The translations under genes and the position numbers were made by a program. A DNA stretch of 64,000 nt from Rebecca billardiae RCC1528 (Eukaryota > Protista > Haptophyta), in contig OZ251223.1 of the NCBI GenBank assembly GCA_965240325.2, forward strand, positions 3,286,001-3,350,000. The letters run 5' to 3'. The notes below the pieces were generated by a model. That model saw only the letters and a program-made list of their open reading frames with translations. It ran no database searches and had not been told where the DNA came from. This document shows positions 18,153 through 39,579 of this stretch, one piece after another (the stretch's first letter is position 1; every line of letters starts with the position of its first letter).

Positions 18153-18736
18153 GGCTGGCTTCGGTTGACCGCCCTGCCAGTGCCAGAGGCAGAGACGGGC
18201 ACTGTGAGCTCCTTCATGAATAAGTCATCGGCTCGTGTCTCGTGCCAATAAAACTGCACGCCTACAGTGTCACGGCACAGGCGGAGGACTACCTCAATGG
18301 ATGCCTATAGAGGCTGCTAGATGATGACTCGACGACTTCACTTTCAGCCGCCCAGCGAGCGACGATATTGGGCCAACAAGCACTTCCTCTATTAAGACTC
18401 TATAGTTCAGACTCTATTTTTACTATCTATTTACCCATTTCAGACTCTGGACAGAACACGGTCCAGGAGCGATCCGGATGCACCCGTAGCTATTGGAAAT
18501 ACGTCACCGGAATGGGTAAATATCTATGAAAAATAGACGCAAGTAGTCACACACTGAGTTTCACACCCTGGGCACTTATTGGCCATCAGCATCCATAGTC
18601 TTAACCCTACTTGGAGCCCTGTGGGACACTTCGCGGGCGTTCATTCGGCCGCAGGAATCATGCGAAGATCATTTTCGGTAGCTACGCCCGGTTTCTATGA
18701 CTACCGGATTGGCAGGGGTCAACCGGAGCCAGAGCC
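18153..18736. mobile_element. Degenerate foldback/MITE-like element, family shared with 39038..39579
   Basis: Outer imperfect inverted repeats (ctggcttcggttgaccgccctgcca ~18155-18179; tggcaggggtcaaccggagccag ~18710-18732); AT-rich core 18381-18537 shares gttcagactctatttttactat with 39222 onward. Confidence 0.6.
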
Positions 18737-19507
18737 TGCTGTCCTTGCCCATGCTCGCGCCCAGTTCATGCACGCCCTGCGACCGATAGGCGATACTAGC
18801 CGATAGTATGATCATTGAATGATTGATACGCCTGATGATGCGCCTCGTGACGCCGGCGCACGCGTCACGGCGGACGACCGAGGAGGGCGCGCGGGCTGGC
18901 CATCTTGGCGGTGGGCTGTACGGGAATGCCCGCGGCGCACGCGCAAAGCGCGTATTCAAACGCTCCCAGACGGGAAATCGACTCGCCGCATCGACTCCAA
19001 ACCGGACGCCGCGCTCGGCGAGGGCTTTCGGGCGTGTGGTTCACAAACATGCCTCTGGGCGGAACTCGCCAGTCTGAACGCGTGCCGCCGCCACCGCGGC
19101 TCCGAGCTTGCCGGGAGATCATAGCGATTTGGCGCGAGACCACAGCAAACGCCGTCTGCCGCCCTCGCGCGCTGACTCGCACGCTCACTCGCGCTCGGCG
19201 CGGCCAGTGGCGCCGATGACGGGCCGTCGCAAGCAACCGCGCACGTCAACGTGTGATCAGTGATGCGCCACGGGCCCGGGCCGCCGGAGCCCCGCCACGC
19301 GGGCTCCGCGCTCCCGCCGCAGTCTGAGTCACAGTGAGTGACACGGGCCGCCGGCGCCGGACTGCCCGCGACGCCCTGTTCGGCTGGAGCGCACGGCTCA
19401 GCCACATTCGGCCGCCCAGGATCACTTAGTATGTGTGACTACAGTATTGGAAATGAGATTTATCGTCAGCCGGTGTGCCGGTGCGGGACTCGACTTGCCC
19501 GACAGCT

Positions 19508-20041
19508 TCAGCTAGCAGTAGGATCGGTAGGCGGGCAATACCGATGGTGCAAGTCCGCAAGCACCCGTGTTGGACCTTCCGTGGCCTCGATGCACTTCTG
19601 CAGCTGCCCCCGGGCCTGATAGGCGCATGCGCCGCCACAGAACTCCTCGATCGTTCGAAGGGCCTCGCGTCGGACCGACTCGTCGGCAGACGCGGCATGC
19701 CGGACGAGGTGCTCCATGCCGCCCTCGACCAGGAAGTCGGAGCATGCCGGAAGCGAGCGCGAGCACCCACGCGCGCGACTGCATCCAGCACGTTGCAAGA
19801 AGGGCTCGGTGGTGTTCAGCAGGATGAGCACATTCTTCGTGCTCGCCGTGTCGACAACCGTGCTGTACATGTACCCCAGCCCGGCCACCGAGACGAGTAA
19901 CGCTCCCTTCGCCACGTTTCCAAATACCTGTGGAAGGCCCGGGTCTTCGCCCGCCCCACCGCCTGTGCGCGTGTGCAGTGCCTCCTGCTTGAGCGTGCGA
20001 GATGCGAGCCGAATTGCTTGGAGTGTTCGCATTGCCGCCAT
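19508..20041 (-). CDS. Hypothetical protein with transit-peptide-like N-terminus, one TM segment and an ARM/HEAT-like helix pair
   Basis: MAAMRTLQAIRLASR leader; ALLVSVAGLGYMY; LVEGGMEHLVRHAASADESVRREALRTI. Confidence 0.5.
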   Translation of the reverse strand: MAAMRTLQAIRLASRTLKQEALHTRTGGGAGEDPGLPQVFGNVAKGALLVSVAGLGYMYSTVVDTASTKNVLILLNTTEPFLQRAGCSRARGCSRSLPACSDFLVEGGMEHLVRHAASADESVRREALRTIEEFCGGACAYQARGQLQKCIEATEGPTRVLADLHHRYCPPTDPTAS

Positions 20042-20438
20042 GATCATCGGTGTTCCCACGGTCACCGATGTGGGGGCCCGCCCCGCCCCGCCCGCGCGGC
20101 GACAGTTAGCCGCGGATTTCAGATTCGCGGAACGGCCGGGCTGCAGGCGGGACGTCGCCCGTGGACGTCGCTCCGTCCGGGCGTCACGCCGTCGCGGACG
20201 TCAGACCGTGAGGATAAGCAGTGTCAGCTAGATCAGATGGAGAGTAGATAGAGAGTGATGCCGAGTTACAATCGGCCTGAGTCCGCGGCGCCCGCCCGCT
20301 TCAACGCACCAACAACGCTGCCAGTCATCACGGTGAGTGTCCTGGCCACTGGCCTCAGATTAGTATTACCTGGGCAGCCGGCGTGACGTAAGCTGATGTA
20401 GCTGTTAGTTTAATAGTTAGCTAGCAGTAAAATCAGCA

Positions 20439-20882
20439 AGTCCCGAGATTTTAATAATCAGCACTACGGTGACAGTGCGTGGCTATACTAGTTTTACTCG
20501 CTAGTCGCTGCTGAAAGCATCAGTGCCGCGGCCTACTGTACTTATATTGGCTTAGTAGACTTCTGCTTAATTGATGCTGATGCTTTTGCTGCCTTTCAGC
20601 AGTGCTTCAAGCTCTGCTGTGAGCGAGGGGAGATCCTCCTCCGGCTCCTGTCGCAGCATGGCGGGCGGCTCAGAGTCCCGAGATTATTTTAATAATCATA
20701 GCGCACTATATGCGGTGACAGTGCGCGTCGCGTTAATAGCTATGATACTAGTTTTACTCGCTGCTGAAAGCATCAGCCATCAGTGCCCGCGGCCTACTTC
20801 TTTTGCTGCTTTTGCTTTGCAAGCTCTGTGAGCGAGGGGAGATCCTCCTCCGGCTCCTGTCGCAGCATGGCGGGCGGCTCAG
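20439..20882. repeat. Degenerate tandem duplication of the kinase 3' end and 3' flank (about 20439-20673 and 20673-20882)
   Basis: 20621-20673 is identical over 53 bp to 20830-20882; the flanking parts align with many short indels. Confidence 0.85.
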
Positions 20883-23118
20883 GCGCCGTTGGGGGCATCG
20901 AGTCCTTGAGCCAGTCGTGCTCAAGCAGCTGCGCGGCCGTCGGCCGCTTCGACGTGTCGCGCTCGAACATGAGCCCCATGGCCGCCTTGAAGGGCGCCGG
21001 GAGCACGGTCGGGTAGTCAGGCGCCGTGTTTGCGTTGACAATGTGGTACATGATGGCGTAGGGGTGCGCTTTGTCGCCGAGCTGGTCGGCCCACGGCGGC
21101 CGGCCCGTGAGCATCTCGATGCACACGCATCCCACGCTCCAGATGTCCGCCTTCCGCCCGTACCCGGTGCCTTGGATCACCTCGGGCGACATCCAGAAGG
21201 GCGTGCCCTTGAGCGTCTGCGCGCCGTCTGTCTTGAACCCCGCGCCCGTCTCCATCATCTGCCACGAGGGCGCAGCCGGGCCGGCGCGCGTGCGCGTCAG
21301 CGTGCTCAACTCGGGCGCAGTGCGGAGCCCGCGCGCGCGCGAGCAGACCACGCGCGGCCGCGCGCGCCACCTTGGCTGAGCCGAAGTCCGCGACCTTGAC
21401 GTGCTGGTAGGTCGCATCGACCAGGATGTTGGCGCTCTTGATGTCGCGGTGGATCACCTCCTTCTCGTGCAGGTACGCGAGCCCGCTGAGCACCTGCGCG
21501 GTGTACGAGGCGATCGTGCGCAGTGGGAGCACGATCTGGTGCGCAGGCGGCCCTGCAGACTCGCCACCGGCCGCCGCCTCCGCCTGCGCGCGCTGCTGCC
21601 GCTGCCGCGCCTGCTGCGCGGCAATCCGTTTGATCAAGTCGGCGAGCGCGCCGCCACGGACGTACTCCATGGCGATGTACAGCTCCTCGTCGGTGCGCTC
21701 GGTACCCAGATAGCGCACGAGGTTCGGGTGCGCGAGCTTGCGCATCACCTGCCGCGGCCGCGCGGGGCGCCGCGGCGCGCGGCGCACCAGTCTGTGAGCA
21801 GGCGGCCAGGGGATGCGGGCGGTGCGCGAGGCTGGGGCGGCGCGCGCGCGCGGCGGTCCGCGCGCACCGCGATCTCGCGCTCGAGCTCCGCGAGCGCCGC
21901 GAGGTCCGTCGCGTTCTGCCCCGCCACCAGGATCTGCTTCACCGCGAAGGTCCGGTGCTGGTCCATGTCCACCGCCAGGAACACGCGCGCGGTCGCGCCG
22001 CGGCCAATCTGTCGGCCGATCTTCCATCGGGAGCGGCCGATCTGCAGGGTGGAGTTCTCGTCGTAGTCGGGGTCGCCGGGCTTGGAGACGCGCGGAGAGC
22101 TGCTGGTCGCCGTGGCCGTCTTCGCCGGCGCCGAGAGCGGGCCCGCCGGCGCGACGACGGAGGGCACGTGCTCGGCCGCCGAGTCGTCGCCCGCGGCTTG
22201 CTTGCGCGGCTTGGGCGAGGGCGGCGCATCGACCGTCAGCACCTTGGACGCGCGCCGCTCGCCGGCGCCGGCGGGCCGAGTGGCGCCGTCGATCGTGGCG
22301 GTGCCCGTCACCTCGATCGACGGCGCCGCTTTCGAGCCGCCCTTCGCGCCCGCCGTGCCCGTCGCCTTGCCCACGGAGGCGAGGCTGGCGACACCGCTCA
22401 CGTCCGTGGCGTCAGCATCCTCGTCGTCCTCAGGCCGGTACGTGAAGTCGACGCCGTCGTCGCTCGAGGCCTCCTCGCCCTCGTCGAGGGCGGCGAGCAT
22501 GCTCTCCGCCTTCTCCGCCGCCGCCGAGCCGCCCGCGGCCGACGCCTCCGCGCGCGCCGCCTGCAGCTCCATCAGCGTCGTCTCAGACAGCCCGTACTCG
22601 AGCGCCAGCGCCTTGAAGTCGAGCTCGGGGATCTCCTCGTCGGCCTGCACCTCGTCGACGACCTGGAGGTCGTCCTCGTCGAAGCCGAATTGGGTCTGCA
22701 GGTGCCACAGCTCGAGCGCCTTCGCCTCGAGCTCCAGGTTCTTCTCCGCCATCATCGTGAAGAAGAAGGGGAAGTCGGCGACCGCCTCGAGCGCATTGCG
22801 CACAACCTTGGTCGACGGCGCGCGCGCGTTGACGGTGCATGCCTGCTGGAGGCGGTCCCAGTTCGCTCCGAGCGAGGTGAGGTGGTTCTCGATCAGATCG
22901 GAAGCCAGCTTCCCGTACGCGGCGTGCACCTGCGACAGAGCGAGCGAGAACCCTTCCCCCGTGTCCCTCGGCTGGCCCTCGACCGGCCATGCTGCCTCGG
23001 GCGACTCGAAGACGGTGCACTCCTGCTCGACGAAGGCGTTCATCGGCTTGGTGAAGGCTTCGGACTTGACGAAGGCCGCCACGGCATCGATCAGCTTGAT
23101 CCCGCCCAGTGAACCCAT
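20794..23118 (-). CDS. STE11/MAP3K-like Ser/Thr kinase with N-terminal ARL2-binding BART (CFAP36-like) domain; exons 23118-21868, 21748-21371, 21258-20794
   Basis: IGRGATARV, FAVKQI, HPNLVRYLG, HRDIKSANIL, DFGSAK, GTPFWMSPE, ADIWSVGC, EMLTGRPPW; N-terminal AFVEQECTVFE...VHAAYGKL...DFPFFFTMMAEKNLELE resembles BART/CFAP36; GT-AG introns. Confidence 0.88.
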
Positions 23119-33959: not shown

Positions 33960-35675
33960 ATGGCGGAGGGCAAGGTCCGCGCCAAAGCACCGCTCGCGCC
34001 CACCTTGGCGTGGCGTGGCGCGCCCGGCGTGGCGCCCCCTCGCGCGTGCCGCGTTGCTCCCATCTGCCCAGCCCGCACCCACGGGCCGCTCCGCACGCTC
34101 CCCCTCCGCGCAGTGGCCGCGGAGCTGACGCGCGCGCGTGCACACGCGCATGTGGCTGGCATCTGCCGCAGGTACCAGTGACTGTGCTGACGGGCTTCCT
34201 CGGCGCGGGGAAGACGACGCTGCTGAACCACATCCTCACTGCGCAGCATGGCAAGAAGATTGCGGTGATCGAGAACGAGTTCGGCGAGATCGGCATCGAC
34301 GAGTCGCTCCTCGCGCAGAAGTCCGTCTCGGTCGACGAGGAGGTTTACGAGATGAACAACGGCTGCGTGTGCTGCACGGTGCGCGGCGACCTGATCCGCG
34401 TGCTCACCAAGATCCTCAAGTCGGGCAAGAAGCTCGACGCGATCATCATCGAGACCACGGGCCTGGCCGACCCTGCGCCTGTCGCGCAGACGTTTTACGT
34501 GGAGGAGGAGCTGCAGGAGCGCGCGCACCTCGACGGCATCATCTGCCTCGTCGACGCGAAGCACGTGCACAACCACCTGAACGACAAGACAGGTGAGGAC
34601 GCGAGCGAGGTGGTCAGCGAGGCGACGCAGCAGGTCGCCTTCGCCGACCGCATCCTGCTCAACAAGGTCGACCTCGTACCGGATGCTCGCGAGCTGGACG
34701 CGGTCGAGGAGCGGCTGCGCTCGATCAACAAGTACGCAGAGATCAAGCGCTGCCAGCAGGCGACGATCGACGTGTCGTGGGTGCTCGACCTGAAGTCGTT
34801 CGACCTGGAGCGCGTGCTCGAGATTGACCCCAACTTCGTGCCGAAGAAGGAGCCCGCGAAGGAGGAGCACGGCCACGGCCACGGCCACGGCCACGGCCAC
34901 GAGCACAAGGAGGAGCACGGCCACGGCCACGGCCACGGCCACGACCACGACTGCCACGACGAGAGCTGCACCGTCGACCACGGCCACGGCCACGAGCACA
35001 AGGAGGAGCACGGCCACGGCCACGGCCACGGCCACGACCACGACTGCCACGACGAGAGCTGCACCGTCGACCACGGCCACGGCCACGAGCACAAGGAGGA
35101 GCACGGCCACGGCCACGGCCACGGCCACGACCACGACTGCCACGACGAGAGCTGCACCGTCGACCACAGCCACGGCCACGGGCATGGTGCTGACGATGGC
35201 TCGCGCACCGCCCACTGGAGCAGCCGGGTGTCTTCGGTCGGCTTTGTGCGCAAAGGCGACCTTGACATGGACAAGGTGCGTGCCCTCGCGCACACCGATG
35301 CGGGCCGAAGCGGCCCCGCACATGCTGGCCGCTCTGCTGCACCCCTGCGTCAGCAGCTCGACTGCCGACGCTCATCTCATCTGACCGCGCGGTGCGTCGC
35401 GGGCCGCGGCGCGTGCGCCACGCGCGCAGGTCAACGACTGGATCGGCACGCTCTTGCAAGAGAAGGGCCCGGACATCTACCGCATGAAGGGCGTCCTCGC
35501 GCTCAAGGACACGCCGACCAAGTTCGCTTTCCAGGCGGTGCACATGCAGATGCAGGGCGAGATGCTCGGGCCGTGGAAGGAGGGTGAGCCGCGCGAGTCC
35601 AAGCTGGTCTTCATCGGTAAGGACCTCGACAAGAAGGCGCTGGGCGAGGCACTCGACGCGTGCATGGTCAAGTGA
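33960..35675 (+). CDS. COG0523/CobW (ZNG1-like) G3E metal-chaperone GTPase; exons 33960-33974, 34172-35275, 35430-35675
   Basis: [30 protein letters not shown] (CxCC), [36 protein letters not shown]. Confidence 0.95.
34901..35179 (+). repeat. Three near-identical 93-bp coding repeats ([31 protein letters not shown])
   Basis: Units start at 34901, 34994 and 35087. Confidence 0.92.
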
Positions 35676-36205: not shown

Positions 36206-37945
36206 AGATACCCGGGGGTGAAACAAGTGAGTATTCCTATCCCTCTTGTATGCTGAAGTACGAGTTTGCCGAGCGACGTTTGATTGTTTTGGGTCGAAAA
36301 CAGCTATGAGGCCAGATTCTTTTGAATAGTGCTTGTTCAAATACGTTACCCGCCTGTCTCGAAGGATGAACCGCCTCGTCATATCAAAAGAGATTCTTTT
36401 CAATAGCGCTTGTGCAACCAAGTTACCCGCCTGCCTCGATGGATGAACCTCCTGTGTCATAATGAAGGGATTGTTTTGAATGGCGCTTGTTGAACCAAGT
36501 TACCCGTCTGTCTCGATGGATGAACCTCCTGTGCCATATGGGGGTAATGAAAGAAAAACTTCGGGTTACCCGCCCGCCAGCGTCTCGCGACGAGGAGGAC
36601 GACGTGCCCAGCGGCAAGCGCGCACATAATATCATCGCCGTCGGCGGGCCCATCTTCGGCCGGCTCGAGCTGATGCACATCACGACGCTCAAGCAGGCGC
36701 TGTCCGTACCGACGTTGGCGCGCCTCCAGCGGATGGTCGACAAAGCACACGTGGGCGAAGGAGGACCACAATCATGGCCGAGTCATCGGAGACGTCGCTG
36801 ACCTCGCGGCTTCAAACCGAACCGCTCAGCCGGTTGCCACCGCGGCCGAGCAGTGCGCGCTCGCCACCGCGGCCGGCGCTGTGCACGGGCGTGCTGAGCC
36901 CGGGCCGCGTGAGCTCGCCCACCTCGCCCGGCGCGCACGCCGACGCCGCCACCGCGGCTCGGCGGCCGGACTACTCTCGGGCGGCGCGTGCGTCCCCCCG
37001 GCCGGCGCGCGCCGCCGTCGCCGCCGCGCAGGCCGGGCGGCAGGCCGTGCACTCGGTGGATGAGGAGACGGCCCTGCTGCGAGATACCCGGGGGTGAAAC
37101 AAGTGAGTATTCCTATCCCTCTTGTATGCTGAAGTACGAGTTTGCCGAGCGACGTTTGATTGTTTTGGGTCGAAAACAGCTATGAGGCCAGATTCTTTTG
37201 AATAGTGCTTGTTCAAATACGTTACCCGCCTGTCTCGAAGGATGAACCGCCTCGTCATATCAAAAGAGATTCTTTTCAATAGCGCTTGTGCAACCAAGTT
37301 ACCCGCCTGCCTCGATGGATGAACCTCCTGTGTCATAATGAAGGGATTGTTTTGAATGGCGCTTGTTGAACCAAGTTACCCGTCTGTCTCGATGGATGAA
37401 CCTCCTGTGCCATATGGGGGTAATGAAAGAAAAACTTCGGGTTACCCGCCCGCCAGCGTCTCGCGACGAGGAGGACGACGTGCCCAGCGGCAAGCGCGCA
37501 CATAATATCATCGCCGTCGGCGGGCCCATCTTCGGCCGGCTCGAGCTGATGCACATCACGACGCTCAAGCAGGCGCTGTCCGTACCGACGTTGGCGCGCC
37601 TCCAGCGGATGGTCGACAAAGCACACGTGGGCGAAGGAGGACCACAATCATGGCCGAGTCATCGGAGACGTCGCTGACCTCGCGGCTTCAAACCGAACCG
37701 CTCAGCCGGTTGCCACCGCGGCCGAGCGGTGCGCGCTCGCCACCGCGGCCGGCGCTGTGCACGGGCGTGCTGAGCCCGGGCCGCGTGAGCTCGCCCACCT
37801 CGCCCGGCGCGCACGCCGACGCCGCCACCGCGGCTCGGCGGCCGGACTACTCTCGGGCGGCGCGTGCGTCCCCCCGGCCGGCGCGCGCCGCCGTCGCCGC
37901 CGCGCAGGCCGTGCACTCGGTGGATGAGGAGACGGCCCTGCTGCG
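36206..37945. repeat. Recent tandem duplication, 876-bp unit (36206-37081; 37082-37945), each copy with three internal 77-bp repeats
   Basis: Copies look near-identical apart from a 12-bp indel and one substitution noticed; identical ORFs in the track are offset by 876; 77-bp units start at 36315, 36392 and 36469. Confidence 0.92.
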
Positions 37946-39037: not shown

Positions 39038-39579
39038 TATATTCTCACTGGCTCCGGCTCCGGTCCACCCCCCCCAGGCGCCCAGCTCCGTTACGTCTTG
39101 GCCCCGAGCCGAAGTCAACCAAGCGGACCCGATGCAGCAGAGTCCCTTCCGACCGCCCCGATTAATTTGGCGATTAATGACTTCAACGATCGAAATGTCG
39201 CATCCGACCACCTCCTAATAGGTTCAGACTCTATTTTTACTATGTAATTACCCGTTCCAGCACAGTGACAGTCCGGGAGTGTTCCGGACACCTGTATGCA
39301 TATGCGAAAATGATACCCGGACTGGGTATTTAGTTATATAAAATAGAGTCTGAACCTATTGGAGGTGTGGCTGATGAAGATCGGATCCATCTGGCCGCGT
39401 ATTCCCGTAGTAATATCGTCCAAGGCAGACCGCCTGGGGTGGTCTAGGAGCTATATATTGCATATCATCAGAGGGCGGCGATCCCGCCGATTGCCAGCCG
39501 GATTGCAGTGTCAAGATGTAACGCTCCAGTGACCGGACTGGGGGGGGGGTGAAGCCGGAGCGGGAGCCCAGTGAATATA
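39038..39579. mobile_element. ~540-bp foldback/MITE-like element with outer imperfect TIRs and an inner ~159-bp inverted repeat (39209-39367)
   Basis: Outer tatattctcactggctccggctccgg..cacccc versus ggggtgaagccggagcgggagcccagtgaatata; inner cacctcctaataggttcagactctatttt versus aaaatagagtctgaacctattggaggtg. Confidence 0.7.

Follow-up and report, generated by a model that had tools for sequence, protein, structure and literature searches.

A tandemly duplicated kinase gene end in Rebecca billardiae, probably reshaped by serial micro-insertions of a kind also found in transposon copies of the same genome

The haptophyte Rebecca billardiae RCC1528 has a 72-Mb genome in 41 contigs with a G+C content of about 68%. 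Here, we describe a locus in a 64,000-nucleotide stretch of contig C3 (hereafter the window) at which the end of a kinase gene and its 3' flank stand in two adjoining copies. The kinase coding sequence (CDS) lies on the minus strand and is of MAP3K-like Ser/Thr type, with a Pfam Pkinase match (E=9e-23) in its last exon; this exon alone, not the spliced protein, served as the query in all kinase searches (Pfam, orthologues and relatives). The kinase frame closes with the stop codon TAG at 20794-20796, on the minus strand. The neighbouring minus-strand gene begins at about 20042, and the duplication is therefore located in the kinase 3' flank. Beside it the last exon is frame-intact, and orthologues of this exon from metagenomes show 72 – 84% identity, with C-terminal tails that cannot be aligned with the kinase tail and are not conserved. 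Searched for other copies of the kinase, whether near paralogues or a second haplotype, the genome gave a best match of 48%, and a metagenome scan for close relatives gave only ones at 35 – 38% and no same-species contig. The features of the locus are as follows (position 1 is the first base of the window).

20794-21258, minus strand: inferred last kinase exon, 154 codons plus stop, borders read from the sequence
21259-21370, GT..AG: inferred intron next to the last kinase exon, likewise read
20439-20673, no strand: copy A, 235 nt, downstream of the kinase stop and non-coding by position
20674-20882, no strand: copy B, 209 nt, made up of the true kinase CDS end (20794-20882) and 120 nt of flank (20674-20793)
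20617-20673, no strand: exact block of copy A, 57 nt, 100% identical to 20826-20882
20826-20882, minus strand: exact block of copy B, 57 nt, coding, within a stretch reading ...EPPAMLRQEPEEDLPSLT
20533-20616, no strand: former CDS tail in copy A, expanded relative to copy B (84 nt versus 32 nt)
20794-20825, minus strand: tail of the present CDS with its stop, in copy B, reading ELAKQKQQKK-stop, K/Q coding of low complexity
20674-20793, no strand: 3' flank in copy B, eight sites longer than in copy A, among them ATT-ATT, AT-G-AT and CATCAG-C-CATCAG
20439-20532, no strand: 3' flank in copy A, with one 7-nt extra piece, TCGCT-AG-TCGCT

Copy A adjoins copy B head-to-tail without a spacer, with homology from end to end, and the content duplicated is the final 89 nt of the kinase CDS together with its 3' flank, which bears out the tandem duplication proposed in a first-pass annotation of this DNA. 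A genome search found no further occurrence of the duplicated unit in the 72 Mb. The junction is blunt, with no shared border base, no microhomology and no filler. The identical block seen in that annotation is real and 100% identical, but measures 57 nt, not 53; the diverged tail is therefore 32 nt in copy B versus 84 nt in copy A, so that the reported expansion from 36 to 88 bp stands as a length gap and not in its sizes. Short repeats in tandem are plentiful in the copy A tail (TAGTAG, GATGCT twice, CAGCAG, CTGCTG), with 18 micro-repeats versus 6.7±4.3 in shuffles. In the kinase frame, copy A stays open for 16 codons past the exact block, reading ...PSLT-AELEALLKGSKSISIN-stop. Use of copy A as an alternative 3' exon was considered and is not supported, as no upstream GT donor that would join it in frame was found by eye and the tail is unconserved in orthologues. 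A search of 20000-21000 against Rfam matched no family, and folding of the target region is no stronger than that of shuffled sequence (z=-1.4).

Global alignment of the two copies, repeated under four gap/mismatch scoring schemes, gives 171 – 175 matches, 0 – 3 mismatches and 12 – 16 gap events of 1 – 44 nt (in one alignment, 173 matches, 1 mismatch and 14 indels), and the earlier observation that the copies differ by indels more than by substitutions holds under every scheme. Copy A is longer at six sites (61 nt) and copy B at eight (35 nt); within the low-complexity CDS tail the alignment is ambiguous. Extra bases copy the adjacent flank for 21 of 96 nt, versus 9.1±3.2 by chance, and take forms such as ATT-ATT, CTG-CTG, AT-G-AT, TCGCT-AG-TCGCT and CATCAG-C-CATCAG. 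The largest extras (43 – 45 nt in copy A, 11 nt in copy B) are not simple flank copies: within the window, the 45-nt extra at 20538-20582 lacks any template of at least 12 nt, and it matches nothing else in the genome; nor was a template for the 11-nt extra found in the genome. These pieces need several nested events or another origin, and may represent nested events at a hot site. As for the untouched 57-nt block, about 2.3 events would be expected in it by an estimate from the event counts at the locus, with P(0) of about 0.1; because the block is coding in copy B, only that of copy A has been free to change, and its integrity is of weak significance at this locus.

Which copy has changed cannot be read from the intact CDS, as had been argued in favor of a gain of sequence, since the tail is unconserved in orthologues, the flank of the CDS-bearing copy B is altered as much as that of copy A (exceeding it by 26 nt), and no outgroup was found. 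The long version in copy A could accordingly lie near the original C-terminus, with the coding copy B shortened by deletions. The 16 open codons past the exact block in copy A, the lack of constraint on the tail in orthologues and the ambiguous alignment in this low-complexity sequence are in keeping with such an opposite polarity at the CDS tail. Small deletions, however, are rare in the transposon copies described below (1 versus 26 insertions), and the extra sequence of copy A contains unusually many tandem micro-repeats, which is what one would expect if DNA had been added; we regard shortening of copy B as distinctly unlikely.

The polarity of small changes in this genome is recorded in a family of miniature elements (MITEs), about 465 nt long and bounded by 28-nt terminal inverted repeats (GGCTCTGGCTYCGGTTGACCCCTGCCAG), with a further, internal inverted repeat. 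At least 160 candidates are present in the genome, and an old copy, swollen by insertions, lies in the window 1.7 kb from the duplication. The copies used and two zones of their consensus are listed here.

window ~18240-18741; L009:8759-9260; L030-L041 at ~1385-1980: MITE copies
MITE consensus 49-165: GC 0.47, 5 substitutions, 18 insertions
MITE consensus 165-274: GC 0.47, 6 substitutions, 0 insertions

Polarity is clear in this family because 12 young, near-identical copies (pairwise about 95 – 99% identical) yield a consensus with which each can be compared. Changes private to single copies comprise 22 substitutions, 26 insertions and 1 deletion (binomial p=4e-7). Insertions are 2 – 17 nt in length with a mode of 2 – 3 nt and none of 1 nt; 16 of the 26 measure 2 – 4 nt, many with a filler base, and 10 measure 5 – 17 nt. 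With the older L009 and window copies included, 114 of 245 inserted nt copy the adjacent flank, versus 27.6±5.9 at random. A frequent form is a repeat, 1 – 2 nt of filler and the repeat again (GA-T-GA, AC-G-AC, ACTGTGA-CT-ACTGTGA, AGTAAC-A-AGTAAC); compound inserts also exist, such as one of 17 nt in L039, and a few events add units to a repeat already present, (AT)n in L038 and ATC in L041. Among the 35 near-full-length copies listed against a 344-nt consensus stretch, none is shorter and 30 are longer (lengths normalised by hand).

The insertions are also unevenly placed. At equal GC, the hot zone has 18 and the neighboring cold zone none, an empty block that has a P of about 0.001 under uniform placement, and consensus sites 63 and 122 have three insertions each. 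With 26 insertions versus 1 deletion and such zoning, the MITE copies support the annotation's proposal of an insertion-biased, locally clustered process. As single-stranded DNA the MITE folds strongly (z=-8.3) and its cold zone lies inside the internal inverted repeat, yet DNA structure gave no clear rule for hot and cold zones and was set aside as an explanation of them.

In their signature, the A/B indels match the insertions polarised in the MITE. Their bias is stronger than the MITE average in the alignment with 14 indels (14:1 versus 27:22 indels to substitutions, Fisher p=0.006), less clearly so in the most substitution-friendly one (12:3, p=0.13), and resembles that of the MITE hot zone (18:5).

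Other repeats and duplicates were surveyed in about 330 kb of the genome in total, and the principal ones are given below.

L019:1467-3073 and L039:8-1498: dispersed repeat pair, 1.5-1.6 kb, ~90% identity
window 39050-39561; L015:6309-6766; L008:7801-8285; L013:4029-4348: family of short dispersed repeats with partial relation to the core of the MITE
L011:9418-9865 (G000:C3 ~3,035,418-3,035,865): perfect tandem duplication, 224 nt x2, 100% identity
window 36206-37081 / 37082-37945: tandem duplication, 876 nt x2, 1 mismatch and one 12-nt indel

The dispersed pair differs by 25 mismatches and 30 indels, L019 being the longer at 23 of the 30 sites; 60 of its 148 indel bases copy the flank, versus a null of 18.7±4.6, with GC-rich contexts included. 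In the short dispersed family, the window member differs from those of L015 and L008 by 18 – 28 mismatches and 19 – 21 indels. AT-rich segments contain near-tandem 5- to 7-mers 3 – 4 times more often than shuffles, an excess that is present in the kinase 3' flank and absent from the rest of the last exon. In contrast, a 114-nt tandem satellite (L031:7-447, L034:192-930), whose unit length equals 38 codons, has units about 10% substituted, with about 50 mismatches and 0 – 1 gaps, while palindrome arms differ by 21 mismatches and 2 indels and 77-nt repeats by 22 mismatches and 2 gaps. The outcome of comparing indels with substitutions across the duplicates sampled, a check proposed in the first-pass annotation, is divided: the MITE and two further families are indel-rich, while the satellite, the palindrome arms and the 77-nt repeats are substitution-dominated, and the insertion process is therefore patchy. 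An initial view of the locus as a lone outlier among window duplicates that are perfect or substitution-dominated was overturned by the MITE and the other repeat families.

Larger tandem duplications occur as well. The perfect one in L011 covers the end of a minus-strand CDS (...FLSHLQA-stop) and about 200 nt of its 3' flank, with a blunt junction. The junction of the 876-nt duplication is also blunt, as in all three local cases (n=3, statistically weak), and its 12-nt indel is a near-tandem repeat of GCAGGCCG. Each 876-nt copy holds 2.9 units of the 77-nt repeat and an apparent plus-strand ORF start (MAESSETSL...). Elsewhere in the window, 34885-35184 is occupied by 3.2 units of a 93-nt repeat, 99% identical, GC-rich and probably coding, with CAC/GGC (His/Gly-like) codons.

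We consider the locus to have arisen probably by a blunt tandem duplication, after which both copies would have gained micro-insertions one after another, through a process typical of this genome. A segment of about 175 – 210 nt (the 89-nt CDS end plus 3' flank) would have been copied in tandem, head-to-tail, across a blunt junction; copy B, upstream, would have kept the gene intact, and copy A, downstream, would have become additional 3' flank. Both copies would then have diverged via the frequent de novo insertions of 2 – 17 nt that appear typical of non-coding DNA here, each duplicating adjoining bases, often with 1 – 2 unrelated bases at the joint, recurring at hot sites and accumulating within hot zones some 100 nt long. 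The targets would be the 3' flank of each copy as well as the low-complexity former CDS tail of copy A, freed from selection. As to chemistry, fill-in of the overhangs left by staggered breaks or paired nicks, followed by end-joining, would fit best, because this would explain duplication of unique sequence, fillers at the joints and blunt junctions, and it is the most likely route by our inference. Error-prone break repair, one of the candidates named in the annotation, is by the same inference the best fit among them. The nearby tandem duplications of 209 – 876 nt may be the large end of the same insertion spectrum.

All differences between copies A and B might instead stem from one messy duplication, in which template-switching repair synthesis (of MMBIR or polymerase-theta type) skipped and re-copied sequence. 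The 0 – 3 substitutions beside 12 – 16 indels would suit a single event, as would the stronger indel bias at the locus than in the average MITE, and the other two tandem duplications nearby consist of identical or almost identical copies, with no gradual series visible. Against this, micro-insertions of the same kind distinguish individual MITE copies at many unlinked loci, and serial accumulation therefore occurs in this genome; moreover, extra pieces are found in both copies, the largest lack a template nearby or elsewhere, unlike templated MMBIR or TMEJ inserts, and the junction has no microhomology. We judge a one-step origin unlikely.

It is very unlikely that mis-joined haplotypes or a poor long-read consensus made the duplication or the inserted bases during assembly or polishing. 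The 41-contig, 72-Mb assembly is probably a long-read one, and errors there are mostly indels; the inserts, however, are flank duplications of 2 – 44 nt and not 1-nt homopolymer errors, their signature is seen privately in individual copies at more than 12 unlinked loci, with repeated hits at identical sites, the neighboring exon is frame-intact, and the assembly has no second haplotype copy of the kinase gene.

Repeated transposon insertion and excision, another candidate in the annotation, would leave target-site duplications with leftover bases. DNA transposons are active in this genome, and in the two 7-nt extras (TCGCT-AG-TCGCT and CATCAG-C-CATCAG) the filler can be read as the reverse complement of the bases just before it, a feature of hairpin-resolved footprints of hAT type. 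Across 38.7 kb of AT-rich DNA, however, palindromic fillers occur at chance (about 25% for 1 nt, 5 – 7% for 2 nt), and a hairpin/hAT footprint reading is thereby rejected as a general signature. Insert lengths at single hot sites range from 2 to 17 nt with no fixed target-site length, and most inserts are of 2 – 3 nt and of the form XY-N-XY. Excision scars are accordingly a very unlikely source, and the annotation's suggestion of them is not supported.

With serial micro-insertion as the preferred reading, the locus is one more local instance of an insertion-biased habit that also marks transposon copies here. A more far-reaching proposal, which we put forward tentatively, is that this haptophyte possesses a dedicated or unusually active source of staggered breaks (a topoisomerase, a nuclease or chromatin-phased nicking) coupled to fill-in end-joining, with small duplicating insertions about as frequent as point mutations and about 25 times as frequent as deletions in neutral DNA, in composition-independent hot zones of about 100 nt. 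Such a source would build stuttering AT-rich DNA after genes, and wider spacing of nicks would give tandem duplications of gene ends of 200 – 900 nt. A genome whose neutral DNA grows by micro-duplications would be exceptional, and this growth could explain how AT-rich spacers and 3' flanks are made and kept in a very GC-rich alga. The locus also serves as a natural experiment, with a coding tail freed from selection beside its still-selected twin, and would show that the same process can remodel gene C-termini.

Among known systems, replication slippage and cryptic simplicity resemble the present case in that short near-tandem repeats are in excess in the 3' flank and in AT-rich DNA elsewhere, and in that a few events simply add a unit to an (AT)n or ATC repeat already there. 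For slippage, a repeat must exist beforehand, and units are lost as well as gained, whereas here mostly unique sequence is duplicated, often with filler bases, and losses are very rare; microsatellite-type slippage was rejected as a general explanation, as it explains few events, most starting in unique sequence, with losses about 26 times rarer than gains. In Plasmodium falciparum the non-coding spectrum is dominated by indels, driven by microsatellites in an extremely AT-rich genome. As in that species, non-coding indels here are as frequent as or more frequent than substitutions; unlike it, the present genome is about 68% GC and events also fall in GC-rich contexts.

In plants, patch-mediated insertions are small tandem duplications produced by fill-in of staggered breaks and end-joining. 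Fill-in by Pol alpha-primase followed by NHEJ likewise yields small tandem duplications, through the Pol alpha-primase/CST/53BP1 axis (PMC8355091). The likeness to fill-in and NHEJ lies in de novo duplication of unique adjacent sequence, in blunt joints without microhomology, in sizes from a few to hundreds of nt and in occasional extra bases at the joint. Unlike in that pathway, insertions here equal or outnumber substitutions and exceed deletions by about 26:1 in neutral repeat copies, and they gather in hot zones about 100 nt long; the pathway itself is proposed here from sequence signatures. De novo duplications of 1 – 4 bp that depend on Top2 and are joined by NHEJ have been described in yeast (bioRxiv 10.1101/2020.05.03.075358), and a human TOP2A mutator gives small duplications of the Top2 type (PMC8795545). 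These resemble the present insertions in duplicating small pieces of unique sequence and in recurring at the same sites, as expected for the cleavage preferences of an enzyme; unlike the published 1 – 4 bp events, 10 of the 26 insertions here are of 5 – 17 nt, many carry 1 – 2 nt of filler and none is of 1 nt.
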